From IMG/VR virus record IMGVR_UViG_3300008110_010000, positions 1 through 64,000 of that record: 64,000 nt of DNA. One strand, given 5' to 3'. Positions 29,461 to 64,000 of this stretch are shown here, in pieces (within the stretch, counting starts at the first letter, position 1; each line of letters begins with the position of its first letter). The notes beneath the pieces are model-generated. The model was not told the DNA's origin, did no database searches, and worked only from the letters and a program-made list of their open reading frames with translations. Made by a program: the position numbers and the translations under genes.

Positions 29461-29461
29461 G

Positions 29462-34244: not shown

Positions 34245-35647
34245 ATTCCTACGTTAATTTCTGTTATATTTCCCTCTCTTTTTCTTCCGTGATCTGTGTA
34301 CTTTAGATCCGATAATCCGTCTCCAAATAAAAGATTGCTGTTATTTCTTACCTCGTTATAGAATCTTAATTGATTCCATCTAGTTGCTTTATCCTTCCAT
34401 CTATTTTCGAAGAAACCATTTTGCTCATGTTTCATGGATTTAAAGATAGAATCCCTTCTGATCGGAAGGTCTATTTTTTTAAACCAAGGACCTTCCATAT
34501 CAACAATTTCACATTTGAAAATACTAGCATCGTTTCCGTTTCCTGAAAGATCTACTAACTTATAATTTTCTATGTGCTCTGCATCATAGTGACAAAGAAT
34601 GGATCCGGATTTTTTATATTCCGAAAAGTCGTTTGTTGCTGAAACAGATTTAACTTCATTTTCACTTAAAATTCCTTCTAAGACTACCAAAGAATCTATG
34701 TACCCCTTGAAAAAATTAGGATCTCCATTTCTTTTAGGATTTCCTGCACCGATAAAGAAATACTTTTCGTCTGAATAATCCTTTAATTCTCCCTCCCAAT
34801 TTGTTTTTCCTATATGTTCTCCGTCTTGATAGAAATTTATTTCTCTCAACGATTGATTTAATGTGATACAAATATTTGTTTGATAATTAGTAGTTATTTC
34901 TGTGTTTATGTATGATGCTTTTTCTTCGGAGTTGAATGTAACAAAATTGTATCTCTTGAATGAATTATAGGAAATTGCAGTGTCATACCCCGGAATGCTA
35001 AAAACCGTATAAACATCAAGATCCTTCGTTGAATCATAAACCAATTCATCGGGGAAAAAAGATGCAAATAATGTTAGATCCTTGTCTATGCAAAAATTAT
35101 TTTTTGCTCTCACAAAAGAATCCTGTCCGTTAAATTTTAGTGATTTATGGAAATTTCTTGTTTTTTTGATGTAATAAGGCTCTGTGCCTATGCTCTTGTT
35201 TTTGCATCTTAGGAAAAGGTCATCATCTTCAAATCCCCATCCCCAATACTTATTTGAATATCCGTTTATCTTTTTGAAATCTTTAATCGGAAACATAGTG
35301 ACCCCGCCGAAGTATTCGTCGAATGGCTTTGATCTTTCCCCCGAGTCCTCGTCCTCTATTAGAGTTGCAAGATGAACTGGATGATCACAGTAAGAATAAT
35401 CAACATCCAATGGCAGCAAATCAACATCATGAAAAACCACATAATCACATCTTAAGTTTCTGGCACACTTAAATCCTATATTTAATAGCATCCCTCGATT
35501 AAATTGCTTACCGTCGTCTTGATTTACGATGATAATTTCATGTGGTATTTTTTCCTCGTTTAGATATTTTACTATCTCCTTGAGAAAAAAATAAAGATGT
35601 TCCCCTCTGTGGCGGAAAGGAACTATGACTCCTAGTTTTTTATCCAT
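34241..35647 (-). CDS. GT7 galactosyltransferase-like protein with inserted LamG domain
   Basis: VPFRHR, FNRG, FHDVD, YFGG, WGWGFEDDDL; FKGYIDSL...DLSGNGNDA. Confidence 0.8.
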   Translation of the reverse strand: MDKKLGVIVPFRHRGEHLYFFLKEIVKYLNEEKIPHEIIIVNQDDGKQFNRGMLLNIGFKCARNLRCDYVVFHDVDLLPLDVDYSYCDHPVHLATLIEDEDSGERSKPFDEYFGGVTMFPIKDFKKINGYSNKYWGWGFEDDDLFLRCKNKSIGTEPYYIKKTRNFHKSLKFNGQDSFVRAKNNFCIDKDLTLFASFFPDELVYDSTKDLDVYTVFSIPGYDTAISYNSFKRYNFVTFNSEEKASYINTEITTNYQTNICITLNQSLREINFYQDGEHIGKTNWEGELKDYSDEKYFFIGAGNPKRNGDPNFFKGYIDSLVVLEGILSENEVKSVSATNDFSEYKKSGSILCHYDAEHIENYKLVDLSGNGNDASIFKCEIVDMEGPWFKKIDLPIRRDSIFKSMKHEQNGFFENRWKDKATRWNQLRFYNEVRNNSNLLFGDGLSDLKYTDHGRKREGNITEINVGI

Positions 35648-35849
35648 CTATTGTAGGGTCCTTTGGTTTTATCGATTTATGAAATTCCGTCAGATAGTAC
35701 TGAATCCTGTTGCTCCAATCATCCTTATCAATATCTTCTATCCAAGCTGAAATGTCATCGAGGGAATCTGAGATTCTTTCGAGTGCTTTTACTTTTCTAA
35801 GTTCCAATTCTAAAAATTGATCCTCGTTTGATTTTTTAGCTGTTGCCAT
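35640..35849 (-). CDS. Hypothetical protein
   Basis: 69 aa ORF in line with the cluster. Confidence 0.55.
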   Translation of the reverse strand: MATAKKSNEDQFLELELRKVKALERISDSLDDISAWIEDIDKDDWSNRIQYYLTEFHKSIKPKDPTIDG

Positions 35850-35850
35850 A

Positions 35851-36699
35851 TTAGATTGATATTATTTTTTTAATTAAAGAGCTCCATTCTTTATAATCTT
35901 CAAAATAGACGCATCCATATTCAAACATAAAATCAGAATTACTGAGGTCTATCCTAGATTTATTTCTCTTTATAGCATCATACATCACTTTATATTCGTC
36001 AGAATATGAATAATCCTGATTAATATCTGCGACATTTTTGATCCTTTCTAAGCATGTTGAATCCCATTTAAAATGGTGGACCTGGACGGAATATTTTTCT
36101 ACTGGTGCAATTAGTGGATGGCTCCATCCTTGCCACCTCCAGGTAGTCTGCCCATTTATTTTTGCATAATGCTGCCCAGAAGTTATTTCAATTCCTCCTT
36201 TAACCAAGCAGATTTTGTTAGGGCATGCGTTACTCATGGGGTATCTGAAAAATCCGGCTATGGGAAACTGGTCAAAGATTGGTACATCTTCAAGTATCTT
36301 ACAGAACTCCCCGTTGTTTCCTATCCTGTCTAGAAATCCTCCCCTAATTAATTCCCACCCCTGACTTTCACAATCACTAACCATATAATTAGGTGACTCA
36401 GGATAAACGTGAAATTCGTCTATATCAGCAATCATGTACCAGTTGCTTCTTGATTTTTTTATTTGTTCATTATATAGATCAGTAACCCTGTTCCAATCAA
36501 AGATCCTATCATAAACAGTTTTAACTATTTTTACTTTTTCCTTACCTCTGATGGAACTTCTTACCTCTCTCTTTAAATCTGGATGCAGATCAGATTCATA
36601 GACCACAAAATTTATTTCATCTACCATGTTATAATAATGATTGATGAAGTGTGGTATTAGAGGAACCCCATGACCTATTATAGATATTAATTTTATCAA
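35851..36699 (-). CDS. Putative glycosyltransferase (GT2/GT92-like)
   Basis: FINHY, ADIDEF, GQH, HHFKW. Confidence 0.6.
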   Translation of the reverse strand: MIKLISIIGHGVPLIPHFINHYYNMVDEINFVVYESDLHPDLKREVRSSIRGKEKVKIVKTVYDRIFDWNRVTDLYNEQIKKSRSNWYMIADIDEFHVYPESPNYMVSDCESQGWELIRGGFLDRIGNNGEFCKILEDVPIFDQFPIAGFFRYPMSNACPNKICLVKGGIEITSGQHYAKINGQTTWRWQGWSHPLIAPVEKYSVQVHHFKWDSTCLERIKNVADINQDYSYSDEYKVMYDAIKRNKSRIDLSNSDFMFEYGCVYFEDYKEWSSLIKKIISI

Positions 36700-40680: not shown

Positions 40681-41751
40681 ATGAGTATCGCCTTAACTTA
40701 TGATGACATCCAATTAGTTCCTGCTTACTCTGAAGTTGTTTCCAGGAGTACAATCAATCTTAACACTTTGGTGACACGAAGATACGGATTAATTAGACCC
40801 CTGGTGGCTTCCCCGATGGATACGGTGTGTGAACTTGACATGGCCTATAGAATTTTTCTATTCGGAGGAGTTGGATGTATCCATCGTTTCATGCCTATTG
40901 AAAATCAATCCCGGATGATTGAGATGCTAAGATATAAAATATATGGAGACGGATTTGGTGGTCCTTTCGAGGATTGGGGAATCATGTATGACGATTGGCA
41001 TTCTGAGATCAAGCAGATACCTATTATGGCAGCTGTTGGAGCTAATGGCGATTATTTGGATAGAGCAAAAAGTCTAATAAAGAATGGAGCAAATATCATC
41101 CTCATAGACGTAGCTCATGGACATCATAAAAATGTCAAAGATGCAATCGAATCTATAAAATCTATTAGTCCCGAAATTGATGTGATAGCAGGAAATATTG
41201 CAACACCAGAAGCTGCTCAAGATTTAGAATCGTGGGGAGCGGACGGATTAAGAGTTGGTATTGGAGGTGGATCCCTTTGTACAACTAGAGTTAAAACTGG
41301 ATTTGGTATTCCTAACGTAACTTGTATAGAAGAGATATCAAAAATTGCCACAGTTCCTGTTATGGCAGATGGAGGTATTCGAACTAGTGGAGATATTGCT
41401 AAGGCTTTAGCACTTGGGGCAAGCAGTGTGATGCTAGGATCATTGCTTGCAGGGACAGAAGAATCCCCTGGACAGATAGTTGAAAAATCAACGGGTCTAT
41501 ATAAAAGATACAGGGGTGCAGCATCATTAGAAACCAAAACGGTTCACGGACAAGCACAGAGAAATGTAGAGGGGGAATCTACAATTATTCCATATAAAGG
41601 AGGAGCTAAATTTGTTTTAGAGGGATTACTTGACGGGGTTAAATCTGCTCTTTCATATGCAGGTGCGGTTTGTTTGAAAACATATCACCCAAAATATGTT
41701 CAAATTACCAACGCTGGTATGAACGAAGCAAAGCCGCATCTGATAAATTAA
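40681..41751 (+). CDS. IMP dehydrogenase/GMP reductase family (no CBS domains)
   Basis: LTYDDIQLVP, ASPMDTV, DVAHGH, GIGGGSLCTTR, ADGGI, YRGAAS. Confidence 0.9.
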   Translation: MSIALTYDDIQLVPAYSEVVSRSTINLNTLVTRRYGLIRPLVASPMDTVCELDMAYRIFLFGGVGCIHRFMPIENQSRMIEMLRYKIYGDGFGGPFEDWGIMYDDWHSEIKQIPIMAAVGANGDYLDRAKSLIKNGANIILIDVAHGHHKNVKDAIESIKSISPEIDVIAGNIATPEAAQDLESWGADGLRVGIGGGSLCTTRVKTGFGIPNVTCIEEISKIATVPVMADGGIRTSGDIAKALALGASSVMLGSLLAGTEESPGQIVEKSTGLYKRYRGAASLETKTVHGQAQRNVEGESTIIPYKGGAKFVLEGLLDGVKSALSYAGAVCLKTYHPKYVQITNAGMNEAKPHLIN

Positions 41752-41801
41752 TTCGGTTCGCACGAAACAAACTTCTTAAAAGATATATAAATTTCATCAT
41801 T

Positions 41802-42183
41802 GGGGGTGTATTTGGCACTTGACAGACATTGGTAGTTCTTTGAGATGATGCAGGCCGAGTTAGTATTGGAAACTCGTTAATCACCTATGCAAACAATAAA
41901 CGACGTAGAATTATCTACAATGACCTTCGAAGACGCTATGTCTTTCGTTGGTGCTGATTACGCAATAGCTGCCTAATCCCTCCCGCACACATCGTGGGGC
42001 TTAAAATAGAATGTGAACCCAGGTGGAATATGACTGAACCCGAAATCGAGTCATCTGAATTTGGTAGTTTAATCAGCCAACTATAAACTACATATTTTGT
42101 TTGTAAAGAAAAACAAGCTAAGCCTGTGAATGAGTTTCTTTTAACAGATGGACTGGACACCGGTTCGATTCCGGTCACCTCCA
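41802..42183 (+). ncRNA. ssrA: tmRNA
   Basis: GGGGGTG/CACCTCC acceptor stem with G3-U70, T-arm GGTTCGATTCC, internal frame 41902-41976 ending YAIAA*. Confidence 0.92.
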
Positions 42184-42199
42184 CAAAAATTAATTTAAT

Positions 42200-51146: not shown

Positions 51147-54100
51147 ATGGCAAATTATAGAATTTTAGGACAAGAAACTGTTAACAATTCGGTAAGTCCG
51201 GGACCTACCCTTGTAACACTTTATACGGTTCCTCAAAATGCTTCCATTCTAATCAATGCAATAACCGGATATAATGAGGGATTTAATAGTGGATATCTTA
51301 CCGTTGCAGTAAAAAGGAACGGGGACGAGGACTATTCTCCAGATCAAATTGTTATAAATACTCCCTTAGCACCCGGTGCTTCAATACAAATTTCTCCTCA
51401 ATTTTCTCCTGTTGGTTTAACTGCCGGCGACGTAATACTTTTAGTTGGTAATTATTCTCCTGCCCCTACAACAGTAGCGGTAACCTTATTCGGTGAAGAC
51501 GGGGCTTCTAGCGGTGGATCCGGCAATGCAGGAACATCCGGAACTTCAGGAAACAGTGGGGGCTCAAGTACTTCAGGAAGTAATGGTACTAGCGGGACTT
51601 CGGGAACTAATGGATCTACAGGAACTGGTGGTACTAGTGGTACCTCTGGAATGAACGGATCTATCGGAACTAATGGTACGAGTGGAACCTCAGGTGAAAC
51701 CTTCGGAACTAGTGGAACGTCAGGGGCAGCTGGTGCTCCTGGAGCAGCGGGATCTTCTGGAACATCTGGGGTTTCCGGAGCATCTGGTTCTTCTGGAACC
51801 TCTGGGGTTTCCGGAGCATCCGGTTCTTCCGGAACATCGGGAAATTCAGGTTCTTCTGGAACATCTGGGATTTCCGGGGCATCTGGTTCTTCCGGAACAT
51901 CAGGAAATTCGGGATCCTCTGGTACATCAGGAAATTCGGGAACCTCTGGTACTTCGGGAGAATCTGGTTCTGCTGGTACATCCGGATCATCTGGAACATC
52001 AGGAAACTCCGGGTCATCCGGTACATCAGGAAACTCCGGGTCCTCCGGTACATCAGGAAATTCGGGAACCTCTGGTACTTCTGGGGAATCTGGCTCTTCT
52101 GGAACATCAGGATTCTCTGGGTCCTCCGGAACATCAGGAAACTCCGGGTCATCCGGTACATCAGGATCCTCTGGAGAACCCGGTTCTGCCGGAACATCGG
52201 GATCCTCAGGTACATCTGGTACATCAGGAAACTCCGGGTCATCCGGTACATCAGGGTCATCCGGTACATCAGGGTCCTCTGGTACATCTGGTGCTGATGG
52301 TACATCCGGTTCTTCCGGAACCTCGGGAAACCCTGGATCATCAGGGACCTCTGGAACATCAGGAAACTCTGGATCATCGGGGACCTCCGGATCCGCTGGA
52401 ACTTCTGGTTTAAGCGGAATATCTGCAGGACAGATTTATTATTTTAACCAATCTCAGTCTTCTGACATTTCTCCATATAAAGTCCTTAGTGTTTACCCAT
52501 CAGGAGCTGCTGAACAAACAGTTCCTATGGTATTAACGGGCGGGCAATTGAATGTTCTGGTAAGTCAATTCCTGACCCCCGAATTGGGATTTGCTGTAAT
52601 TCCACCAGGCACTCAGAGATTTCATCTGCATTTTTTAAAACAACAGTTTAATGATGACATAGATGGCTATGTTACCATAGAACTTGCAAATTCGTCAGGT
52701 GTAGGATATGGCACTATTATTCAATCAAACAAAGCTTTAATTGGATGGGTGAGTGTTTCTCAATCTTATGAGCTGTTGGTTGATATTGTTTTACCTTCAG
52801 TATACATAAACACCACAGACAGAATGATTGTCAAGGTTTACGTTGACAATAATGAAGCAACCGTCAGAAATTTAACTTGGTACACAGAGGGGGCTCAAAA
52901 CTATTCATATGTAATCACATCGGTTGGAGCAATTGTAGCAAGCTCTGGAACGTCAGGGAGTTCTGGAACTAGTGGATCAAGCGGAACTTCGGGATCCGGG
53001 GGTTCATCAGGAACTAGCGGATCTAGTGGATCGGAGGGAACTTCAGGTAGCTCTGGTACTTCCGGCAGTTCTGGAACCTCTGGAGAAGATGGAACTTCAG
53101 GTAGCTCTGGTACTTCCGGCAGTTCTGGAACCTCTGGAGAAGATGGAACTTCGGGATCTGGGGGTTCATCAGGAACTAGCGGATCTAGTGGATCGGAGGG
53201 AACTTCAGGTAGCTCTGGTACTTCGGGAACCTCTGGAGAAGATGGAACTTCAGGTAGCTCTGGTACTTCGGGAACCTCTGGAGAAGATGGAACTAGTGGA
53301 TCTTCAGGTACATCAGGAACCTCGGGGGTGTGCGAGTGTCCACACAGCTACACTATCACGGCTCCAACGGATATCACGTGTTACTCTTTAACAAATGACG
53401 GAGATCCCGACAACGTAAATAGTACAAACTATCTCGATTGTAACGGGAATCCTGCGGTCATTTACAATAAAATTTTTCTCACACCAGCTACTTATTTCTG
53501 TGCTCAGACCGGATCTGTTACAACTGATTCGGGGCTCACTGTAATATCAGTACCTGATGATCCTGGATCTTGCGACGGATGTTGCGATGGATATGCTTAT
53601 TCTTATACCGACGAAACAGATACTATCATAAGTGGAATCATATATGACGGAGAATCTCTAACTTTCTGTGCGATCCCAGGATCTGTAGTTTGGTCCCATA
53701 CAATAGTAGACAATGGGCATTGTGTAGGAAGTTCAGGTACTTCCGGCAGTTCTGGTTCGAATGGTACGTCAGGTAGCTCTGGTACTTCCGGCAGTTCTGG
53801 ATCTTCTGGGACATCAGGAACTGATGGTTCCTCCGGTAGTACAGGTACTTCTGGTTCTTCCGGCAGTTCTGGATCTTCTGGGACATCAGGAACTGATGGT
53901 TCCTCCGGTAGTACAGGTACTTCTGGATCCTCAGGGTCATCTGGAACTTCCGGAACTGATGGATCTTCAGGTACATCAGGTAACTCTGGTTCTTCTGGAA
54001 CCTCAGGATCAGCAGGTACATCAGGAAATGAGGGTCCCCCTGGATCTTCGGGAACGTCAGGAATTGATGGAACCAACGGATCGACAGGTTCTTCTGGAAC

Positions 54101-55778
54101 CTCAGGAAACTCTGGTTCTTCAGGTACTTCAGGTACTTCAGGTAGTTCTGGTTCAACTGGTACTTCAGGTAGTTCTGGTTCTTCTGGAACCTCTGGTTCT
54201 TCTGGTTCAACTGGTACTTCAGGTACTTCAGGTACTTCCGGTAGTTCTGGTTCAACTGGTACTTCAGGTAGTTCTGGTTCTTCTGGAACCTCAGGAAACT
54301 CTGGATCTTCTGGAACCTCTGGAGCATCAGGATCTTCTGGAACCTCAGGAAACTCTGGTTCTTCTGGAACCTCTGGAGCATCAGGTAGTTCTGGTTCTTC
54401 TGGAACCTCTGGAGCATCAGGATCTTCTGGAACCTCAGGAAACTCTGGATCTTCTGGAACCTCAGGAAACTCTGGATCTTCTGGAACCTCTGGAGCATCA
54501 GGATCTTCTGGAACCTCAGGAAACTCTGGATCTTCTGGAACCTCTGGAGCATCAGGATCTTCTGGAACCTCTGGAGCATCGGGAGCTAATGGATCTTCTG
54601 GAACCTCTGGAGCATCAGGATCTTCTGGAACCTCTGGAGCATCAGGAGCTAATGGATCTTCTGGAACCTCTGGAGCATCAGGAGCTAATGGATCTTCTGG
54701 AACCTCAGGAAACTCTGGTTCTTCTGGAACCTCTGGAGCATCAGGAGCTAATGGATCTTCTGGAACCTCAGGATCTTCTGGAACCCGAGGTTCCTCAGGA
54801 ACTTCAGGAGCTTCCGGTGGAAACGGAACATCCGGAACTTCAGGAGCTTCCGGGGGAAGCGGAACATCCGGAACTTCGGGAGCTTCTAGTTCAGCAATAT
54901 CTAGTAATAACATCGACAACTATGTTGTTACCATGACTGGAAACAATTCCACGCCTTTCCAAGGGGAGCCTAACTTAACATTCGATAATACGAGACTTTT
55001 TGTAACTGGGAAAGTAAGGGTTTATCAAAATCCATTAAGCATAAGTTCAGGAAGTCTTTCTTGGCCTTTAAGATCTGGAGCAAATGCAACAGTTACTTTA
55101 AATCAAAATGTAACTACGTTTACACTTAGCGAATTTGAAGCTGGAGATACTGGGGTATTAATAGTAAAACAAGATGCTACTGGAGGTAGAACAATGGTAC
55201 TTCCCTCTAGTTCACAAGTAGTTGGAGGAGGATCTTATACCCCAACATCCGCTGCAAACTCACAAGACGTTCTTGGAGTTTACTACGACGGAACAACATA
55301 TTTCTGGACCATTGGGCTCGCTAGTGTTACAGGTAACTTACTTACAATAAACAATAATGCAGATCACAGAATATTGACTGCAACTGGTAGTGCTACTTCG
55401 ATAGACGGAGAAACAGGATTGACTTATAACAGCAGTACATTAGCAGTAACTGGAGCAATCACAGCAACAGGAGATATCACTGCTTATTCATCTTCGGATG
55501 AAAGATTAAAGGATAATATTTCGGTTATTCAGGATGCTTTGGAAAAGGTCTCTAGCATAAGAGGAGTGGAATTTGATTGGAACGACAAGGCTCATGAAGT
55601 TAATAGAGGTCACGATCTTGGAGTAATTGCTCAAGAGCTGATTAAAGTTCTTCCTGATGCAGTTAAAGAAAGAGAAGATGGATATTATGGGGTAAGATAT
55701 GACAGAATTATACCTCTTCTCATAGAGGCTATAAAAGACTTAAGAAAAGAAATAGAAGAACTTAAAAGAGAAAAATAA
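51147..55778 (+). CDS. Tail fibre-like protein with G/S/T repeats and C-terminal peptidase S74 chaperone
   Basis: Three GTSGSS repeat blocks; SSDERLKDNI...GVIAQE...YDRIIPLLIEAIK at the C-terminus. Confidence 0.85.
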   Translation: MANYRILGQETVNNSVSPGPTLVTLYTVPQNASILINAITGYNEGFNSGYLTVAVKRNGDEDYSPDQIVINTPLAPGASIQISPQFSPVGLTAGDVILLVGNYSPAPTTVAVTLFGEDGASSGGSGNAGTSGTSGNSGGSSTSGSNGTSGTSGTNGSTGTGGTSGTSGMNGSIGTNGTSGTSGETFGTSGTSGAAGAPGAAGSSGTSGVSGASGSSGTSGVSGASGSSGTSGNSGSSGTSGISGASGSSGTSGNSGSSGTSGNSGTSGTSGESGSAGTSGSSGTSGNSGSSGTSGNSGSSGTSGNSGTSGTSGESGSSGTSGFSGSSGTSGNSGSSGTSGSSGEPGSAGTSGSSGTSGTSGNSGSSGTSGSSGTSGSSGTSGADGTSGSSGTSGNPGSSGTSGTSGNSGSSGTSGSAGTSGLSGISAGQIYYFNQSQSSDISPYKVLSVYPSGAAEQTVPMVLTGGQLNVLVSQFLTPELGFAVIPPGTQRFHLHFLKQQFNDDIDGYVTIELANSSGVGYGTIIQSNKALIGWVSVSQSYELLVDIVLPSVYINTTDRMIVKVYVDNNEATVRNLTWYTEGAQNYSYVITSVGAIVASSGTSGSSGTSGSSGTSGSGGSSGTSGSSGSEGTSGSSGTSGSSGTSGEDGTSGSSGTSGSSGTSGEDGTSGSGGSSGTSGSSGSEGTSGSSGTSGTSGEDGTSGSSGTSGTSGEDGTSGSSGTSGTSGVCECPHSYTITAPTDITCYSLTNDGDPDNVNSTNYLDCNGNPAVIYNKIFLTPATYFCAQTGSVTTDSGLTVISVPDDPGSCDGCCDGYAYSYTDETDTIISGIIYDGESLTFCAIPGSVVWSHTIVDNGHCVGSSGTSGSSGSNGTSGSSGTSGSSGSSGTSGTDGSSGSTGTSGSSGSSGSSGTSGTDGSSGSTGTSGSSGSSGTSGTDGSSGTSGNSGSSGTSGSAGTSGNEGPPGSSGTSGIDGTNGSTGSSGTSGNSGSSGTSGTSGSSGSTGTSGSSGSSGTSGSSGSTGTSGTSGTSGSSGSTGTSGSSGSSGTSGNSGSSGTSGASGSSGTSGNSGSSGTSGASGSSGSSGTSGASGSSGTSGNSGSSGTSGNSGSSGTSGASGSSGTSGNSGSSGTSGASGSSGTSGASGANGSSGTSGASGSSGTSGASGANGSSGTSGASGANGSSGTSGNSGSSGTSGASGANGSSGTSGSSGTRGSSGTSGASGGNGTSGTSGASGGSGTSGTSGASSSAISSNNIDNYVVTMTGNNSTPFQGEPNLTFDNTRLFVTGKVRVYQNPLSISSGSLSWPLRSGANATVTLNQNVTTFTLSEFEAGDTGVLIVKQDATGGRTMVLPSSSQVVGGGSYTPTSAANSQDVLGVYYDGTTYFWTIGLASVTGNLLTINNNADHRILTATGSATSIDGETGLTYNSSTLAVTGAITATGDITAYSSSDERLKDNISVIQDALEKVSSIRGVEFDWNDKAHEVNRGHDLGVIAQELIKVLPDAVKEREDGYYGVRYDRIIPLLIEAIKDLRKEIEELKREK
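51507..52420 (+). repeat. GTSG/SSG low-complexity coding repeat, block 1
   Basis: 9/18/27-nt period units such as tcttctggaacatc. Confidence 0.9.
52941..53328 (+). repeat. GTSG repeat block 2, with EDGTSG units
   Basis: Near-exact duplications such as gggggttcatcaggaactagcggatctagtggatcggagggaac and tctggagaagatggaact. Confidence 0.9.
53727..54890 (+). repeat. GTSG repeat block 3
   Basis: Many near-identical ggatcttctggaacctc units. Confidence 0.9.
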
Positions 55779-56131: not shown

Positions 56132-56832
56132 GCCAGAGATATTACATGACCAGCTTAGGAAGAAGGCCTACTGGACCATCTACTGCTATCATCGGTAGTG
56201 ATGCCGATGTTCTGATGTTCAGATATGTTTGGCCAGGAACTTTGAATGGAGGTGATGCTGATACATTCACTGGCATTGAACCAGGAACTGGTACATCCTA
56301 TGATGGTATAAAAAATGCTAGCGGGGCACCAACCCGTTATGTTGGATATGCTCCAGGGGGAGGAATGACATCTACTGTGGGCTCGACGACAGGCATAAAT
56401 ACCTCAACAACACTCATTTATTGGGCTGGTGATAATACCTCAACTGCTGGACAGGAAGTTGTTTTAGTTAGACCCAAATCAATAGCTGCATTAGACACCT
56501 CTATAACAAGATGGAAAATCGGAATATATCTCAATTGGTATGATACAGTAGGGGTTGGGTGTATGGACTTTATAATCAGGTGCTACAGTGGTTCAACTTT
56601 CTCGGATACCGGTACAGACATCAGTGCATCAGGGGGAACGCTTTTAAGAACTTACCTGTTTAATGCTAATACAAACAACCAAAATAATCCCTCTGGGACT
56701 GGATACCCATCGAATGGTATCAATGGATATGCTCAAATCGGTATTTTTGAATTTTTTTCCAGTGGAGATGGGTTTTTTAGATATAATCTAACCTCTATCG
56801 GGAGCTGCAGTACTGAGAATGATATGGCTTAA
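56128..56832 (+). CDS. Putative virion structural protein
   Basis: G/T/S-rich, 234 aa, translationally coupled to the tail fibre operon. Confidence 0.55.
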   Translation: MSQRYYMTSLGRRPTGPSTAIIGSDADVLMFRYVWPGTLNGGDADTFTGIEPGTGTSYDGIKNASGAPTRYVGYAPGGGMTSTVGSTTGINTSTTLIYWAGDNTSTAGQEVVLVRPKSIAALDTSITRWKIGIYLNWYDTVGVGCMDFIIRCYSGSTFSDTGTDISASGGTLLRTYLFNANTNNQNNPSGTGYPSNGINGYAQIGIFEFFSSGDGFFRYNLTSIGSCSTENDMA

Positions 56833-56851
56833 TTTTTTTGTAACTTTTTTG

Positions 56852-56887
56852 TATATTTGTATAAAATAGATATTCAAACGATATATA
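56852..56887 (+). promoter_or_regulatory. Promoter region of tRNA array 1
   Basis: TATATTTG (Bacteroidota TAnnTTTG -7 box) at 56852-56859 and GATATATA at 56880-56887. Confidence 0.55.
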
Positions 56888-56898
56888 GATCAATTAAC

Positions 56899-56991
56899 AT
56901 GAAAAAAGGTTTCAACATATTGCCCCTTCATAGTTCGTTATCATCTTCAACAAGAAGACCGATAACCCCTGTGGAGAATCTGGGCAATTAA
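56899..56991 (+). CDS. Attenuator leader peptide 1 (30 aa)
   Basis: MKKGFNILPLHSSLSSSTRRPITPVENLGN*; its 3' end contains the antiterminator strand. Confidence 0.75.
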   Translation: MKKGFNILPLHSSLSSSTRRPITPVENLGN

Positions 56992-57016
56992 GAAACTTAA
57001 ATTCATTTTAGTTCTA

Positions 57017-57058
57017 AAAAACCCAGATCTCCTTCAAAAGAGGTCTGGGTTTTTATTT
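57017..57058 (+). terminator. Attenuator terminator 1
   Basis: cccagatctc/gaggtctggg 10-bp stem plus tttttattt; 5' arm can alternatively pair with ggagaatctggg (56973-56984). Confidence 0.85.
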
Positions 57059-57060
57059 AG

Positions 57061-57073
57061 GGTTCTTTGACAT
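57061..57073 (+). promoter_or_regulatory. boxA-like element GGTTCTTTGACAT
   Basis: Identical 13-mer also at 63977-63989; resembles rrn boxA. Confidence 0.5.
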
Positions 57074-57086
57074 TGTGGAAAATAAC

Positions 57087-57173
57087 GGAGGCTTGGCAGA
57101 GCGGTCGAATGCGGCAGTCTTGAAAACTGCTTTACGGGTAACTGTAACCGGGGTTCGAATCCCTGAGCCTCCG
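57087..57173 (+). tRNA. tRNA-Ser (TGA)
   Basis: gcagt-cttgaaa-actgc anticodon arm, long variable arm, G73. Confidence 0.92.
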
Positions 57174-57178
57174 CAATT

Positions 57179-57251
57179 GCCTCCTTAGCTCAGCTGGTAG
57201 AGCGACGCACTTGTAATGCGTAGGTCATTGGTTCGATCCCGATAGGAGGCT
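57179..57251 (+). tRNA. tRNA-Thr (TGT)
   Basis: acgca-cttgtaa-tgcgt. Confidence 0.92.
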
Positions 57252-57322
57252 CGATACTAACGTAAAACTTGTACACTAACATAATCCTTGTTAGCGTACA
57301 AAAAGTTCGTTAGCAGTCAAAT

Positions 57323-57409
57323 AGAGAGGTGTCCGAGAGGCTGATGGAGCACGCTTGGAAAGCGTGTTTACGAGCGATCGTAACAAGGGTTCGAATCCCT
57401 TTCTCTCTG
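57323..57409 (+). tRNA. tRNA-Ser (GGA)
   Basis: cacgc-ttggaaa-gcgtg, long variable arm. Confidence 0.9.
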
Positions 57410-57414
57410 CACAT

Positions 57415-57520
57415 GCCGGTGTGGCGGAATGATGACTTGGCCAGTCATAGACGTCCCTGATCTAGAGTGGGGGTGTAACCGAAAAGGACACCGTGAAGGT
57501 AAACAACCCTTCCACCGGCA
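57415..57520 (+). ncRNA. Atypical tRNA-Leu-like RNA (probable TAG register)
   Basis: gccggtg/caccggc acceptor stem and Leu-type D arm, but a hairpin inserted in the D loop, a non-TTCGA T loop and a mismatched anticodon stem. Confidence 0.55.
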
Positions 57521-57526
57521 CCTTTT

Positions 57527-57612
57527 GCCTGGGTGTTGGAATAGGTAGACAAGACAGACTTAAAATCTGTTGGACTGCAAAGTCCGTGCGGGTTCGATTC
57601 CCGCCCCAGGTA
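57527..57612 (+). tRNA. tRNA-Leu (TAA)
   Basis: acaga-cttaaaa-tctgt, long variable arm, A73. Confidence 0.92.
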
Positions 57613-57709
57613 CAAACCAAAAACAGCGTCGAGCCACATTTTGCGTCGTTCTTGGTCTAGATCTTCTCAACGGGAGAGGTGGCCGCGACCCCGAGGAGAT
57701 CACCAAATT

Positions 57710-57783
<74 letters not shown>

Positions 57784-57792
57784 CATTAAAAT

Positions 57793-57866
57793 GTTGGATG
57801 TAGCTCAGTTGGCAGAGCACTAGCTTGTGGCGCTAGATGTCGCCGGTTCGATCCCGGTCGTTCAAC
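57793..57866 (+). tRNA. tRNA-His (GTG)
   Basis: ctagc-ttgtggc-gctag; G-1:C73 pair. Confidence 0.9.
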
Positions 57867-57872
57867 CATTAT

Positions 57873-57949
57873 CGAGTAGTTCGGGAGTCAGGTTACCCGG
57901 CTTGGTTTGGGACCAAGACAACTCGCAAGTTCGAATCTTGCCTACTCGA
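57873..57949 (+). tRNA. tRNA-Pro (TGG)
   Basis: cttgg-tttggga-ccaag; cgagtag/ctactcg acceptor stem. Confidence 0.88.
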
Positions 57950-57955
57950 CAAAAA

Positions 57956-58046
57956 GGAGAGGTGCCTGAGTGGCCGAAAGGGCCGGTTTGCTAAACCGTT
58001 GTACGGACTTAAATCTGTACCGAGGGTTCGAATCCCTCCCTCTCCG
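57956..58046 (+). tRNA. tRNA-Ser (GCT)
   Basis: ttgctaa anticodon loop, long variable arm, G73. Confidence 0.9.
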
Positions 58047-58106
58047 CGTAGATTCTAAGCTAATTTTCTTTCCAGTAGGATATATAAATGGACATAAAAA
58101 TAGGAA

Positions 58107-58802
58107 ATGGAAATTATCACTAGATTTTTAGACTTCGTTAACGAGTCCATGATTTTAGAGTATCGCCCCAAGTCAGAACAAACCGGGGCTTACTCTATTT
58201 TTAAAATCACATTCTCCAATGGAGAAACACATTATGGACAACTAAGGGGTATTATCGACCCCGATGTTTATCTTAATACACTAAGATCCGGAGCTAAAAA
58301 CGCAGCATCAAAAACGAGGTTGCAAGAAAGAATTCTTTTCGAAGAGCCAAATCCAGACACAGAACTAGTCTTTTTTTCAAAAGACGAGGGTGAGGTTGTT
58401 GAAAAAATGAAAGATCTAGTTAAGAATGATCCTGACAGCATAAATACCCTGAATATGATAGGGTTAAAAAGAAGACTCGGTGTCAAGAATAAAACCATTT
58501 CAGTTCCGATTGATAAAACATATCTTTCTTCCGATGATCAAATTTTCATAGAAATGGATTATGCTATGAACGATCCGGAATTAAAATTAAGAGTTGATCT
58601 AGGAAAGACAGCATATAATCCAATAAACAGGAAAAAGTATGTTAAATCGAAAAACAAGAATTATATTAAACTAATTTCATTGGAAAAACCCACAGAATTT
58701 TCTGGCGAAACTGACTATCCCTATAAAGAATTAATACCCACAGAGGAAATGACAGCGGATTATATCAAGCAGTACTTTGGATTGGGTAAATACTCGAGAT
58801 AA
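58107..58802 (+). CDS. Hypothetical protein with capsid-targeting-like N-terminus and GIY-YIG-like segment
   Basis: MEIITRFLDFVNE; AYSIFKITFSNGETHYGQ resembles GIY-YIG; GATATATA at 58079-58086. Confidence 0.45.
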   Translation: MEIITRFLDFVNESMILEYRPKSEQTGAYSIFKITFSNGETHYGQLRGIIDPDVYLNTLRSGAKNAASKTRLQERILFEEPNPDTELVFFSKDEGEVVEKMKDLVKNDPDSINTLNMIGLKRRLGVKNKTISVPIDKTYLSSDDQIFIEMDYAMNDPELKLRVDLGKTAYNPINRKKYVKSKNKNYIKLISLEKPTEFSGETDYPYKELIPTEEMTADYIKQYFGLGKYSR

Positions 58803-58842
58803 GTCCCTTAAATCACGCAACTTCTTAAAATTTAATAATATT

Positions 58843-58916
58843 GGACCTGTAGCTCAGTTGGTTAGAGCACCTGACTCATAATCAGTAGGTCCCTGGTTCG
58901 AGCCCAGGCTGGTCCA
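58843..58916 (+). tRNA. tRNA with CAT anticodon, probably tRNA-Ile2 (lysidine type)
   Basis: ctcataa loop; GGACCT acceptor stem with C4:G69 and C5:G68. Confidence 0.8.
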
Positions 58917-58933
58917 CGATATTTTTGTTATGT

Positions 58934-59863
58934 ATGAAAACTATTTGGGTTTTAGAGGACATAAAAAAAGATGGAGAATTTTTCCTTCATGAGGTTGAGC
59001 TCGTTTGTCTGATTGCATCAGTTTCGAATTGGAAGGTGTTATATCCGGAATGTGAAACTGTAATTTATGTGTGTCCCTCAGTTTACAATTATCTAGAAAA
59101 AATTGGAATTTTAAATTTATGGGACAGTGTAGAAACTAATCCTTTATCAAAAAGTGATAATATTAATAGAAGAGCTTTCTGGACTGCTTCCAAGCTGAAG
59201 TGTATGAAAAACATAGAAGCTCCTTTCATAATGATGGATTGTGATTTATATTTCAAAAGAAAAACATTTGAAATCAAGGACTTATCCAAATACGATATAA
59301 TAGTTAATCAGATCGAAGAAGGAGTAAAGGTTTATCCCAGCATCAAAGACAAAATACTAAATCAGATAGTAAATGAATATCCGATTAAATTCGGATGGAA
59401 AAACACACATTCAACCAACGTTTCATTCCTTTATATAAATAATGAAGATTTTAGAATGGAATATGCTAACATCTCATTGGAATGGATGGAAATCCTTTCG
59501 CAAAGATTTTGGGACGATCCTGATTTGAACGGAAAATATATGGTTTTTTGTGAACAGAAGATTTTAAAAGAGCTTGGGGATTTAAGAGTTCAAAAGATAG
59601 CAGCTCTTTCTCCACAATTCTTTTTCGGAGAAGAAAATACAATTCTGAATATCCCTGATGAATATGGAACTTTTTCAATGAATGACAGTCTAGATTATTC
59701 TCATCTCCATGCGAATAAAAGATTTGTTCTCAAGGACAGGAGTCTTTTTTTAGATATAAGAAGCGATATTATAGAATCCATGGTAAATCTAAATAGTTTT
59801 ACTATGAAACTTTTGCATCAGATATTACTTAAAAATAAAGAAATAATTGGCCCAGTGGCGTAA
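58934..59863 (+). CDS. Putative glycosyltransferase-like protein (DUF6734-like)
   Basis: FWTASKL, PFIMMDCDLY, FCEQ, HLH. Confidence 0.55.
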   Translation: MKTIWVLEDIKKDGEFFLHEVELVCLIASVSNWKVLYPECETVIYVCPSVYNYLEKIGILNLWDSVETNPLSKSDNINRRAFWTASKLKCMKNIEAPFIMMDCDLYFKRKTFEIKDLSKYDIIVNQIEEGVKVYPSIKDKILNQIVNEYPIKFGWKNTHSTNVSFLYINNEDFRMEYANISLEWMEILSQRFWDDPDLNGKYMVFCEQKILKELGDLRVQKIAALSPQFFFGEENTILNIPDEYGTFSMNDSLDYSHLHANKRFVLKDRSLFLDIRSDIIESMVNLNSFTMKLLHQILLKNKEIIGPVA

Positions 59864-59930
59864 TTGGTAGCCGCACTAGACTTAGGATCTAGTGTCGAAA
59901 GACGTGGGGGTTCGAGTCCCTCCTGGGTCA
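59849..59930 (+). tRNA. tRNA-Leu (TAG)
   Basis: ctaga-cttagga-tctag, variable arm gtc-gaaa-gac. Confidence 0.92.
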
Positions 59931-59938
59931 CACAGAAA

Positions 59939-60556
59939 ATGATAGTTCACTTTATTTGGGTTGGGGATCGAAAAATTCCTCAGCATTTTTTGTCTAATCT
60001 GGAAAAGTTTAAATCCTTAAATCCCTCTGAAGAAATTCTGGAGTGGGACGATGAGCATTTAATCCCATTAATTAAATCTTACGGCAGGGAAGAACTTTAT
60101 TTTTCTTCTGGTATTTTCCACAAGTTACAAATTGCTAGATACACTGTTTTAGATTACTATGGAGGAATTTACATAGACTATGATCTGAATTGGAAAGTCT
60201 CAGTCAAAGAAGGACTAGGATTAAGAACAGAAAGGGATCTGTGTTTAATTAAAAGAAGATCCCTATATTTCTACAAGAAAGAAGAATCAATCTTAAAGAT
60301 TGATCTATTAGACGATTATGTAATTTTTGCTAAGCCTGGAATTACAAACGGGTTTATAGATTATAGCCTGAACAGGTTCCTAGATAAATCTAGAATCAAA
60401 GAATGCCAAACTGAACCTTTCAGCGTGTATTCTTTGACTGAATGGGTTCACGATTCACAATTCGATTTTGATTGTTTCGATCATACTGAGATATATGACA
60501 GCGGGGAATGTAAGCTAGCATATCATGATAACAAAAAAACCTGGGAGGGAAAATAA
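59939..60556 (+). CDS. GT32-like glycosyltransferase (DxD sugar-binding)
   Basis: IVHFIWVG, ARY..L..YGGIYIDYD; start moved out of the tRNA. Confidence 0.75.
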   Translation: MIVHFIWVGDRKIPQHFLSNLEKFKSLNPSEEILEWDDEHLIPLIKSYGREELYFSSGIFHKLQIARYTVLDYYGGIYIDYDLNWKVSVKEGLGLRTERDLCLIKRRSLYFYKKEESILKIDLLDDYVIFAKPGITNGFIDYSLNRFLDKSRIKECQTEPFSVYSLTEWVHDSQFDFDCFDHTEIYDSGECKLAYHDNKKTWEGK

Positions 60557-60558
60557 GA

Positions 60559-60870
60559 ATGCCGACTAAAAAAATAAAAGAGATAGTTAAAGAGTATAAG
60601 GATGCAACCGCCTTTGAGATTTTTGAGGGAGTTAGAGATAATTTTCTCTTTGGATTTATTGGAGCAACTTTGGTAGTTTTCATTTCGACCCGGTTAGATA
60701 TAGGAGTTTTATTGGGTTATATTACATATTACTATTTTATGGGAAGAATTGTAAATCGTCCTAAATACGTGACCTCCTTAGGAAAATTAATAGTTTTCCC
60801 CATTCCCTCTGCACTTGGGGCTTTTGCAGGATACAAGTTAGCTTATTATCTACATCTGATAATTCAATAA
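60559..60870 (+). CDS. Small membrane protein
   Basis: Several hydrophobic segments. Confidence 0.6.
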   Translation: MPTKKIKEIVKEYKDATAFEIFEGVRDNFLFGFIGATLVVFISTRLDIGVLLGYITYYYFMGRIVNRPKYVTSLGKLIVFPIPSALGAFAGYKLAYYLHLIIQ

Positions 60871-60872
60871 CT

Positions 60873-60945
60873 ACACCCGTAGTTCAATGGATTAGAACAC
60901 TTGACTACGGATCAAGAAATGTGGGTTCGACCCCTACCGGGTGTA
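60873..60945 (+). tRNA. tRNA-Arg (ACG)
   Basis: cttga-ctacgga-tcaag; acacccg/cgggtgt acceptor stem. Confidence 0.9.
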
Positions 60946-60997
60946 CATTTTTTATTTTTAAAAAATCCTCGTAAATTTGATCCTAAATTAAAAAGCA

Positions 60998-61258
60998 ATG
61001 AAAAAGATTCTTCTATTCTTATTAGTTCTAGGATTTAGCTATTCCGTATTTGCTCAGGAACCTAAAACTGTTGAAGTTACAATTCAAAAATTTAGGGAAA
61101 TTAAAAAAGATTTGGAAAAGAGGAAAATTGCCTACTATATAGATGCTGGCATTATCCACACAGAAAACTTCGGTAAAGAACCTAAAGAGATCTTGATTTA
61201 TGTTTCCAAGGATGAAAACGGACTGAAACAGGTTTTAACTACTGGAAGTAGACCTTAA
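60998..61258 (+). CDS. Small secreted hypothetical protein
   Basis: MKKILLFLLVLGFSYSVFA-Q signal peptide; TAAATTTG box upstream. Confidence 0.65.
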   Translation: MKKILLFLLVLGFSYSVFAQEPKTVEVTIQKFREIKKDLEKRKIAYYIDAGIIHTENFGKEPKEILIYVSKDENGLKQVLTTGSRP

Positions 61259-62460
61259 TTATCAACCTTACCAGATCCATGGGTGATTCCCCCCGTTCCT
61301 ATTCCTCCTGTGGACTGTACAGCGGAACCTACCTCAACATTTGCAATCGCACTATTGTATGTTTTTGGCATTTCTCTTAAGATTCTATTTACTATTGCGT
61401 TAGAAAGCACGTTCCAGTATTTGGGTAAAAATTCATCAAATTCTGGGTAGTCCTTAAGTGTTTTTGGCTGGTAGATCTTTAGCATCTCCATGATTTGGGT
61501 TTTTATAGAGGTGGGATCGAAACTTTTGATGTCATTTGGCTGTGCACTTACAATTTTTTCAGCATATGGTTGGAGATCCACCTTATAAATTTTACTTAAA
61601 TCCATCGGATAAAAATCCGATAAACCAGCAAGACAATATTGAAAAACAACAGCTAAATAGTACGCCGGCGGTTCTTTTGCGAAAACCTTCTTCATCTCGC
61701 TAAATCCGAAAAACGAGCTAAATTTAGAATTCCATTTAGCATTATTTCTTAAGAAATGAGCTGCTTTAATTCCATCAGCGATACTATCTCCTGAAACTAC
61801 TATTTGATCATTAGAGCTAGTTTGAATTTCGTCTGGTTTTTGATCTTGTGATAAAGCTTCTTTGAGTTGATTCTCGAATCTTTTCACAAGATCGGCATAT
61901 CCAGTTGAGATCCTAACTCCATTTGCTTGATCATATTTTCCATTAACACTTAGACCCATTCCTTTTCTAGTGACCTCTCCAATTTTGATCATCATGATTC
62001 CCTCAAATGGAAACTTATAATCAAACGAATTTTTAGTAACTGCAACATTCAAATAATGCAAAGCTCTTAATAAAGCTAATAATCCATTTCCCGAACCCTC
62101 GACTTCCAAAACTGTGGAATTATTGAACGGAATCTTGACGGAACCGGTTTCTGTCATTGTGTATTTTTTGCCATCAGCAGTTATTGTTAAATAATCCATT
62201 CCTGCTTTGACTTTTTTCCCGCTCGTTACACTCTCGAATTTTTTTGCAGCCCCTATCTTTATCATCTCTTCTACTCCGCTTATTTTAAGCGAGGTTGTGG
62301 TATCCTGTTGAATACCTATAGGATTTGCAGCTCCCGCAAAAAGATTGTCAGTGTCTGTGGATCCTATAACGGCTATAAAACCTTTATCTGTTCCTTCCTG
62401 CTCTAAGATTGCATAGCTGTTTCTTTTTAAGAATTGATCGAACGTTTCTAGTATTTTCAT
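61255..62460 (-). CDS. Hypothetical protein with capsid-targeting-like N-terminus
   Basis: MKILETFDQFLKRNSYAILE; 401 aa. Confidence 0.65.
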   Translation of the reverse strand: MKILETFDQFLKRNSYAILEQEGTDKGFIAVIGSTDTDNLFAGAANPIGIQQDTTTSLKISGVEEMIKIGAAKKFESVTSGKKVKAGMDYLTITADGKKYTMTETGSVKIPFNNSTVLEVEGSGNGLLALLRALHYLNVAVTKNSFDYKFPFEGIMMIKIGEVTRKGMGLSVNGKYDQANGVRISTGYADLVKRFENQLKEALSQDQKPDEIQTSSNDQIVVSGDSIADGIKAAHFLRNNAKWNSKFSSFFGFSEMKKVFAKEPPAYYLAVVFQYCLAGLSDFYPMDLSKIYKVDLQPYAEKIVSAQPNDIKSFDPTSIKTQIMEMLKIYQPKTLKDYPEFDEFLPKYWNVLSNAIVNRILREMPKTYNSAIANVEVGSAVQSTGGIGTGGITHGSGKVDN

Positions 62461-62461
62461 A

Positions 62462-62475
62462 AAGATATATATCTT
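62462..62475. promoter_or_regulatory. Palindromic bidirectional GATATATA promoter candidate
   Basis: aagatatatatctt perfect palindrome between divergent genes. Confidence 0.6.
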
Positions 62476-62491
62476 GTAAATATTCGTTTAT

Positions 62492-63286
62492 ATGAGAAAA
62501 ATACAGTCATTTTCACAATTTGTCAGCGAAGCTCAATTTGCTATAAGTGATCCCTCAACAGCAGGAGAGAAATTAGCAGGTGTCCTAGTAGCTAATAAAG
62601 ACGCAAAAGAAGAACCAAAGGGAAGTAATAAAGGACCGGAAGTAGACAAATATCTACAATCAGTAGGATTAGGCCCAGGTTTACCCTGGTGTGCAGCCTT
62701 TGTTTATTATATTTTTGACCAGCTTTCCAAGCAACTTGGAACTTCAAACCCACTTCCTAAGACTGGAGGGGTAATGAATCACTGGAATAAATCAGACCAG
62801 GATGCAAAGATTACCATAGATCAAGCTAGGATCAATCCAAATTTAGTTAGGCCAGGACAAGTATTTATAATGACCAGACCAGGTAAAGGATTGGGACATA
62901 CTGGTATAATAGTATCAGTAGATCCACAAAAGAAAACCATGACAACTATGGAGGGTAACACCAACGATCAGCTTTCTGGTGAAGGTAACAGAGTCGGAAC
63001 TAATGTGAGAAAATTGGATCAAGGAACCCTAGTAGGATTCTTGGATTATTTTAAAACAAGTAGAACACCAGAATTTGAAGCAGATCTTTCTAAAGCAATA
63101 ACAGGTCAAGCCACAGCATTACCTCCTCTTTCAGCTGACGATGTTCCAGGAGACGATGTAGTAGGTCCGGTTAAAACCGATGCTGGAGGACAATTAATGG
63201 CTCAAGCTCTTGGTAATGTTGCAGCGGCAACTGCAAATATGGAAGCTCCTAGAACACCAGAAGAAGTTCCGGTGGAACTTAGATAA
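62492..63286 (+). CDS. CHAP-domain peptidoglycan amidase-like protein
   Basis: PWCAAFV, GHTGI, EGNT catalytic motifs; starts MRKIQSFSQFVSE. Confidence 0.8.
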   Translation: MRKIQSFSQFVSEAQFAISDPSTAGEKLAGVLVANKDAKEEPKGSNKGPEVDKYLQSVGLGPGLPWCAAFVYYIFDQLSKQLGTSNPLPKTGGVMNHWNKSDQDAKITIDQARINPNLVRPGQVFIMTRPGKGLGHTGIIVSVDPQKKTMTTMEGNTNDQLSGEGNRVGTNVRKLDQGTLVGFLDYFKTSRTPEFEADLSKAITGQATALPPLSADDVPGDDVVGPVKTDAGGQLMAQALGNVAAATANMEAPRTPEEVPVELR

Positions 63287-63321
63287 ATAGATTATTAAAT
63301 ACAAAAATATAATAAGTAGAT

Positions 63322-63618
63322 ATGAAACATCTTAAAGGATATAACGAAATAAGCGAAAGTTTTTTCGATTTTAATTTTGGAAGGCCTACCGCTACAAAGG
63401 CAGCTAAAGACAGTCTAAGAGGAACTGGGGTTTCTGGATATTCAAGGGGAGATCAAAATTACGGAGAAGCTCCAGATCCTAAGAAAGAGGTAGTAATTTT
63501 TCAAGGAAGGGAATTCACGCAGGATCAAATAGAATATGCTGGTTATAACGATCTTGGAGAAATTCCAAGAATTGAAGGAGATAAATTAATTATTGCAAAT
63601 CCTGTTTGGGAAATGTAA
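63322..63618 (+). CDS. Hypothetical protein with capsid-targeting-like N-terminus
   Basis: MKHLKGYNEISES. Confidence 0.65.
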   Translation: MKHLKGYNEISESFFDFNFGRPTATKAAKDSLRGTGVSGYSRGDQNYGEAPDPKKEVVIFQGREFTQDQIEYAGYNDLGEIPRIEGDKLIIANPVWEM

Positions 63619-63676
63619 TTTTTTTCTTAAATTTACACGAAACAAAAAATAACGTTTGATATATAACAAACATCTC

Positions 63677-63760
63677 ATGAAGACTCAGTTCACATATAAT
63701 TGCAACCAAATGCCTGAACAAGGTAATAAGGGGGATTATATGGATACGGATCTGGGTTAA
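63677..63760 (+). CDS. Attenuator leader peptide 2 (27 aa)
   Basis: MKTQFTYNCNQMPEQGNKGDYMDTDLG*; GATATATA at 63658-63665; antiterminator strand overlaps the last codons. Confidence 0.7.
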   Translation: MKTQFTYNCNQMPEQGNKGDYMDTDLG

Positions 63761-63780
63761 CATGTCTAAAATATAAATTG

Positions 63781-63816
63781 AAAAACCCAGATCCAAAAGG
63801 TCTGGGTTTTTCTTTT
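63781..63816 (+). terminator. Attenuator terminator 2
   Basis: cccagatcc-aaaa-ggtctggg plus tttttctttt; 5' arm perfectly complementary to ggatctgggtt (63748-63758). Confidence 0.85.
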
Positions 63817-63819
63817 GAT

Positions 63820-63891
63820 GGCGATTTGGCCGAGTGGTTCAGGCAGGGGTCTGCAAAACCTCTTACTCCAGTTCGACTCTGGAAATCGCCT
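63820..63891 (+). tRNA. tRNA-Cys (GCA)
   Basis: ctgcaaa loop; ggcgatt/aatcgcc acceptor stem; U73. Confidence 0.92.
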
Positions 63892-63899
63892 CAGAAATT

Positions 63900-63971
63900 G
63901 GGGATATAGCTCAGCGGTAGAGCAAGCGACTGTTAATCGCTAGGTCATAGGTTCGAATCCTTTTATCCCCG
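63900..63971 (+). tRNA. tRNA-Asn (GTT)
   Basis: agcga-ctgttaa-tcgct; G73. Confidence 0.92.
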
Positions 63972-64000
63972 CAGATGGTTCTTTGACATATTGGAAAACT

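Follow-up and report, generated by a model that had tools for sequence, protein, structure and literature searches.

An uncultured freshwater phage carries, in front of its tRNA genes, a short leader reading frame, an anti-terminator and an intrinsic terminator arranged as in the trp operon; the leader frame is built from the codons which those tRNAs read, and the phage probably makes the tRNAs only when translation runs short of them. The arrangement is best read as a ribosome-mediated (leader-peptide) transcription attenuator which gates a phage tRNA gene array. It occurs twice in the window, which is the whole 64,000-nucleotide stretch analysed here (positions 1 to 64,000 of IMG/VR record IMGVR_UViG_3300008110_010000). 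The window belongs to a large phage, the longest matching public contig being 219 kb; it contains a tmRNA gene and 14 tRNA genes.

Two leader cassettes and the tRNA genes behind them

The components of the two cassettes are as follows; the cassette nearest the window edge is termed leader 2.

63658-63665 (+): promoter-like motif GATATATA of leader 2
63677-63760 (+): leader uORF 2, 27 sense codons plus TAA (63758-63760), encoding MKTQFTYNCNQMPEQGNKGDYMDTDLG; the ATG lies one base earlier than a quick count suggests; codons 2-22 form the sensing window
63682-63691 (+): segment 1 (GACUCAGUUC, codons 2-5), which pairs with segment 2 in the fold of the free leader
63748-63758 (+): segment 2 (ggatctgggtt), the anti-terminator strand, overlapping the last four codons and the stop
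63780-63793 (+): segment 3, the terminator 5' arm, shared with the anti-terminator (63784-63794, aacccagatcc); the loop is at 63794-63798
63799-63816 (+): segment 4, the terminator 3' arm (63799-63812), plus the U tract (TTTT)
63820-63972 (+): tRNA-Cys(gca) at 63820-63892 and tRNA-Asn(gtt) at 63900-63972, the first genes of the array
56880-56887 (+): GATATATA motif of leader 1
56899-56991 (+): leader uORF 1, 30 codons plus TAA, encoding MKKGFNILPLHSSLSSSTRRPITPVENLGN
56973-56984 (+): segment 2 of leader 1 (GGAGA-A-UCUGGG), which pairs with CCCAGAUCUCC at 57022-57032
57017-57054 (+): terminator of leader 1, 15 pairs with an 8-nt loop, with the same aaaaacccagatc / ggtctgggttttt core
57087-58047 (+): tRNA cluster 1, Ser-tga, Thr-tgt, Ser-gga, Leu-taa, Arg-tct, His-gtg, Pro-tgg and Ser-gct

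Every element described for leader 2 in the initial annotation is present in the sequence, in the right order and spacing. Segment 2 is a perfect 11-nt complement of 63784-63794. The terminator, found by a terminator scan, has a 14-pair stem and ends 8 nt before tRNA-Cys, which leaves no room for another promoter. The tRNA genes were identified with ARAGORN and Rfam. A search for further cassettes had been named in advance as a check; the decamer AACCCAGATC occurs exactly only at these two cassettes within the window.

The GATATATA motif is probably the promoter element of this phage. It occurs 11 times in the window, nine times on the + strand; all nine + strand copies lie between ORFs, just upstream of a gene start. 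One of them precedes leader 1 and one sits 12 nt before the tmRNA gene (window 41782-42186; Rfam 79.5 bits; tag peptide DVELSTMTFEDAMSFVGADYAIAA), so ribosome rescue and tRNA supply may share a promoter type. The host, the polymerase which reads the motif and the transcription start were not identified. No Shine-Dalgarno sequence precedes the uORF of leader 2, although the neighbouring phage genes which were read lack one too.

The initial annotation proposed a second attenuator of the same design with a swapped sensor segment, and predicted from the codons of leader 2 that tRNAs beyond the window edge would include several of Gln, Tyr, Asp, Glu, Gly, Lys, Met and Phe. Downstream tRNAs unrelated to the leader codons would have counted against it. 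Five near-identical IMG/VR contigs extend past the window; in these, Cys and Asn are followed by Glu-ttc, Lys-ttt, Tyr-gta and Gln-ttg. Then comes a 1.2-kb gap holding one opposite-strand and one same-strand ORF, followed by Asp-gtc, Gly-tcc and Gly-gcc; whether these last three genes are on the same transcript was not established. Six of the eight predicted amino acids are therefore found, while Met and Phe tRNAs are not found within 5 kb. The shared promoter motif, the shared terminator core and the ribosome-maskable anti-terminator are also confirmed, and the proposed interpretation is supported.

The match between leader codons and tRNAs was measured under strict wobble rules against every same-length window of the phage's own ORFs of at least 200 codons. 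In leader 2, 18 of 26 codons are cognate to the nine downstream tRNAs and all nine are covered; 1 of 17,093 null windows does as well (p about 6e-5). Asp-Gly-Gly lie behind an opposite-strand gene; when only the six adjacent tRNAs are counted, the match is weaker (12 of 26 codons; 236 of 17,093 null windows). Leader 1 covers all eight cluster-1 tRNAs, with 12 of its 14 core codons strictly cognate (8 of 16,940 null windows; p about 5e-4). The two leaders divide the codon space: leader 1 has 12 codons for its own cluster and 8 for the other, while leader 2 has 18 for its own and 2 for the other (Fisher p = 0.002).

A second count allowed U34 to read a whole family box and included the CAU and Leu-tag tRNAs, which are adjacent to the cluster in relatives. 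Under these rules codons 7-24 of leader 1 are 18 consecutive cognate codons, a run seen in 0 of 16,940 null windows. The codons of leader 1 outside its sensing window (KKG.N at 56899-56913 and EN.GN at 56971-56988) belong almost entirely to the other cluster's set. The tRNA with anticodon CAU at 58843-58917 is called Met; it sits directly in cluster 1 in two relatives (contigs L029 and L380), and leader 1 has two ATA codons. It could be a lysidine-type tRNA-Ile2, although its identity elements were not examined.

Folding and conservation of the leaders

Both leaders fold far better than shuffled sequences, with z-scores of -5.6 for leader 2 and -9.0 for leader 1. In the minimum-free-energy fold the start of the uORF (segment 1) pairs with its end (segment 2), and the terminator (3:4) stands beside it. 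In leader 2 the uORF hairpin containing 1:2 has -25.6 kcal/mol, the 2:3 helix -17.6 and the 3:4 terminator -20.8; in leader 1 the corresponding values are -33.5, -19.3 and -22.4 kcal/mol.

At equilibrium the full-length leader always folds into the terminator, also when a stalled ribosome is included, so the choice must be kinetic and made while the RNA is being transcribed, as in the classical cases. A snapshot was therefore taken with the transcript cut before segment 4. Segment 3 is captured by segment 2 when the ribosome A-site is at codons 1-22; segment 2 is covered and segment 3 is left free when the A-site is at codons 23-28. All nine tRNAs have a codon inside the 2-22 window. The state without a ribosome is less certain: full-leader folds show 1:2 in groups A, B and C (B and C are described below), while in the cut transcript 2:3 already beats 1:2 at equilibrium, and these two results do not agree on which pairing would form.

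A metagenome scan with a conserved spacer found six further leader-1 variants and two leader-2 variants. The 2:3 helix is 96% paired in register, against 4-46% when slid. One position changes from G-C to A-U with the matching change in segment 4 (CTGGG / CCCAG / CTGGG becomes CTAGG / CCTAG / TTAGG); the leader 1 helix is conserved with a compensatory change in 7 variants. This is one evolutionary event, so the support is modest. Relatives keep the ATG, the frame and the stop; the only indel inside an ORF is 3 nt, while 4-nt and 2-nt indels lie just outside. In the sensing window of leader 1, the five amino-acid changes (I>L, S>T, L>S, S>L, T>S) all stay inside the cluster's codon set.

In three relatives a missing tRNA goes with a missing codon. 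L029 has neither tRNA-Lys nor a Lys codon; L380 has neither tRNA-Cys nor a Cys codon; a third contig, L331, lacks tRNA-Leu-taa and has TTA TTA changed to TCA TCA. There are also exceptions: L380 keeps two Lys codons without a tRNA-Lys, and L029 keeps AGC without tRNA-Ser-gct and has GGC although only Gly-tcc is seen there. The spacers inside tRNA cluster 1 are long (57253-57322, 57411-57526 and 57614-57709) and vary from 8 to 608 nt in relatives. The first forms a strong hairpin (-21.5 kcal/mol, z = -6.7); the other two are weakly structured (z about -1.9).

The same design is found in two unrelated phage groups, which were recovered first through the terminator alone and then through a family pattern. 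Group B has uORFs ending GVCV*. Group C (contig L090) is T4-like; its clamp loader is 61% identical to that of Methylophilales phage Melnitz, its closest cultured relative. Both groups have sigma-70-like promoters. In several contigs the -10 box lies 6-9 nt before the ATG, which suggests leaderless mRNAs. The end of the uORF (GGGGTTTGTGT) is complementary to the terminator arm (ACACAAACCCC), and an early uORF segment can pair with that same end. The cassette precedes arrays of up to 26 tRNAs.

The leaders of groups B and C hold 17-20 different amino acids in 31-42 codons, and five of them (contigs L128/L171, L149, L141, L129/L158 and L090) hold all 20. They stand before arrays of 17-26 tRNAs in L128/L171 and L149, and before shorter or cut-off arrays in the others. 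None of 14,035 random 31-residue windows from the same contigs reaches 20 amino acids, and 34 reach 19. In these groups the fraction of leader codons cognate to the array is not above background; the signal is completeness, not selectivity.

Generic terminator patterns (AAACCCAGA..TCTGGGTTT and ATCTGG..AACCCAGAT) on viral contigs returned mostly unrelated phages, and were useful only after filtering for tRNAs. Relatives found through the neighbouring endolysin-like gene have no tRNAs nearby. The group-B pattern gave three chance matches and no cassette in 185,579 bacterial and archaeal genomes. Among cultured phages, neither tblastn with a leader peptide nor blastn with leader DNA gave any real match. 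Only one tRNA and no array is annotated in the two-thirds of the Melnitz genome that was read, while the tRNA array of E. coli phage garuso has plain promoters and no cassette.

Proposed mechanism and alternatives

In the proposed mechanism, transcription starts just after the GATATATA motif and the short uORF is translated at once. If the ribosome runs through to the stop codon, it would cover segment 2; the terminator would then form and transcription would end 8 nt before tRNA-Cys. If the ribosome is held up anywhere in codons 2-22 because a tRNA is scarce or uncharged, segment 2 would stay free and pair with the terminator's 5' arm, and RNA polymerase would read on into the tRNA genes. Without any ribosome, segment 1 would pair with segment 2 and the terminator would form. 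Since the uORF is built from the codons read by the tRNAs behind it, the circuit would be a negative feedback on the supply of exactly those tRNAs; the sister cassette would do the same for Ser, Thr, Leu, Arg, His and Pro.

This explanation is likely. The parts, the mutually exclusive pairings, the codon-tRNA match and the conservation across relatives are read directly from sequence, whereas translation of the uORF, the start site, the coupling of ribosome and polymerase, and conditional termination are inferred from it; the response of termination to ribosome stalling was not measured, and there is no experimental or read-level evidence of conditional termination. Metatranscriptomes were examined only as contigs, which mostly matched other organisms' tRNAs. 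The only RNA-library support is a 189-nt contig of a close relative (window 56933-57123; 4 substitutions, 2 single-base gaps), which runs from mid-uORF 1 through the terminator into tRNA-Ser; this fits read-through RNA, but DNA carry-over is not excluded. In contrast to the classical scope of leader-peptide attenuation, which is amino-acid biosynthesis or synthetase genes, the controlled genes here are tRNAs.

An alternative, which is unlikely, is that the cassette is a general meter of translation speed or ribosome arrival. It would report overall ribosome progress, for example during host shut-off or stress, and codon composition would matter only loosely. The leaders of groups B and C hold nearly all 20 amino acids, including some (Phe, His, Val) with no tRNA in the array, and their cognate fraction is not above background; the equilibrium folds also imply a kinetic race between ribosome and polymerase. 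However, the two leaders of the window's phage are specialised for their own clusters, the prediction made from codon content succeeded, and loss of a tRNA goes with loss of its codon in three relatives.

An RNA switch which works without translation, for example by direct binding of uncharged tRNA (T-box-like) or of a phage protein, is very unlikely. The leader RNA is strongly structured, and T-box leaders are a known way to sense tRNA. No T-box hit appeared, even at E up to 5, in 56800-64000, and no Rfam family other than tRNA and tmRNA was matched at the gathering thresholds; the ATG, the frame and the stop position over segment 2 are conserved; an all-20-amino-acid composition has no meaning for an untranslated RNA; and the -10-like boxes close to the ATG in groups B and C suggest leaderless translation.

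An ordinary leaky terminator or insulator following a small independent gene, with constitutive read-through and a coincidental codon match, is equally improbable: terminators with this core are common (the generic pattern hit more than 120 contigs, most without tRNAs nearby) and some arrays lack a cassette, but promoter, uORF and terminator sit directly before tRNAs with no other gene between them in three unrelated sequence families, the uORF end is complementary to the terminator arm in all of them although several were found through the terminator alone, the null probabilities are low, and 2:3 shows a compensatory change.

A broader reading is only slightly more likely than not. In this view, large phages of several lineages carry a dedicated sensor of the cell's decoding capacity: a leader ORF which samples the codons of its own tRNA cargo, or all 20 amino acids, and switches the array on only when some tRNA becomes limiting. 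Causes could include host tRNA-cleaving defences, host shut-off or codon mismatch. Where the array is split, each part would have its own matched sampler. This would be the first case of tRNA genes under leader-peptide attenuation, and a natural multi-input gate which responds when any tRNA is low.

Related systems and other features of the window

Leader-peptide attenuators of amino-acid biosynthesis operons (trp, his, thr, leu, ilv, pheA) share with these cassettes a promoter-proximal short ORF enriched in regulatory codons, four segments with 1:2 and 3:4 against 2:3, an intrinsic terminator directly before the controlled genes, a stop codon placed so that a terminating ribosome masks segment 2, and similar helix energies. 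Here, the controlled genes are tRNAs rather than enzymes, so the sensed species is also the product. The regulatory codons are not a run of one amino acid but a sampler of 6-9 different tRNAs, or of all 20 amino acids in groups B and C, and the element is phage-borne. There is no sequence-family membership: Rfam Thr_leader (RF00506) matches 63732-63816 at 31.3 bits against a gathering threshold of 55, and at the gathering thresholds the whole-window Rfam scan matched only tRNA and tmRNA.

The pheM leader of the E. coli pheST operon also applies leader-peptide attenuation to a component of the translation apparatus; it controls a tRNA synthetase, senses one amino acid (Phe) and is chromosomal. 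T-box leaders of Gram-positive bacteria use a terminator and an anti-terminator to read the state of specific tRNAs and control translation-related genes. A T-box binds uncharged tRNA directly and needs no translation, while here the ribosome would be the reader.

How phages regulate their tRNA arrays, and what the arrays are for, is debated; the main candidates are codon compensation, replacement of degraded host tRNAs and escape from anticodon nucleases. Phage tRNAs have been considered as counter-defence against tRNA-cleaving host systems (PMC10264068, PMC11464382), and the cargo here is the same: tRNAs which keep translation going when host tRNAs are unsuitable or destroyed. PMC10264068 mentions no promoter, terminator, leader or attenuator. 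Full-text literature searches found no description of leader-peptide control of tRNA genes, although the collection searched is incomplete and prior description elsewhere is not excluded. The element described here would make expression of such arrays demand-driven.

A demand-driven switch whose sensor is written in the codons of the cargo would show that the arrays respond to tRNA shortage, and would make that idea directly testable. The design extends a textbook mechanism to non-coding products and to many inputs in one leader. It also gives a compact, modular part, in which swapping the codons changes the input, that could be used in synthetic biology. In addition, it offers a computable signature for annotating phage genomes: a uORF with unusually complete amino-acid coverage, whose end is complementary to a terminator placed before tRNAs.

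A 22-nt motif, GGTTCTTTGACAT..TGGAAAA, occurs twice in the window (57061-57082 and 63977-63998) against 0.02 expected. One copy lies between terminator 1 and the first tRNA, the other between tRNA-Asn and tRNA-Glu. It is nearly invariant after leader 1 in all relatives aligned, but is absent from the Asn-Glu spacer in L029, L380 and a further contig, L004. It is unstructured, contains TTGACA and has no usable -10 box behind it; no function could be assigned.

Gene content elsewhere in the window (13606-15480, 19445-36699, 40681-41751 and 51147-55778) is typical of a very large phage. It includes a Hint/intein-domain protein, a block of glycosyltransferases and radical-SAM enzymes, an IMPDH/GMP-reductase homologue, and a 1543-residue collagen-repeat protein with an endosialidase-chaperone end which is probably a tail fibre.
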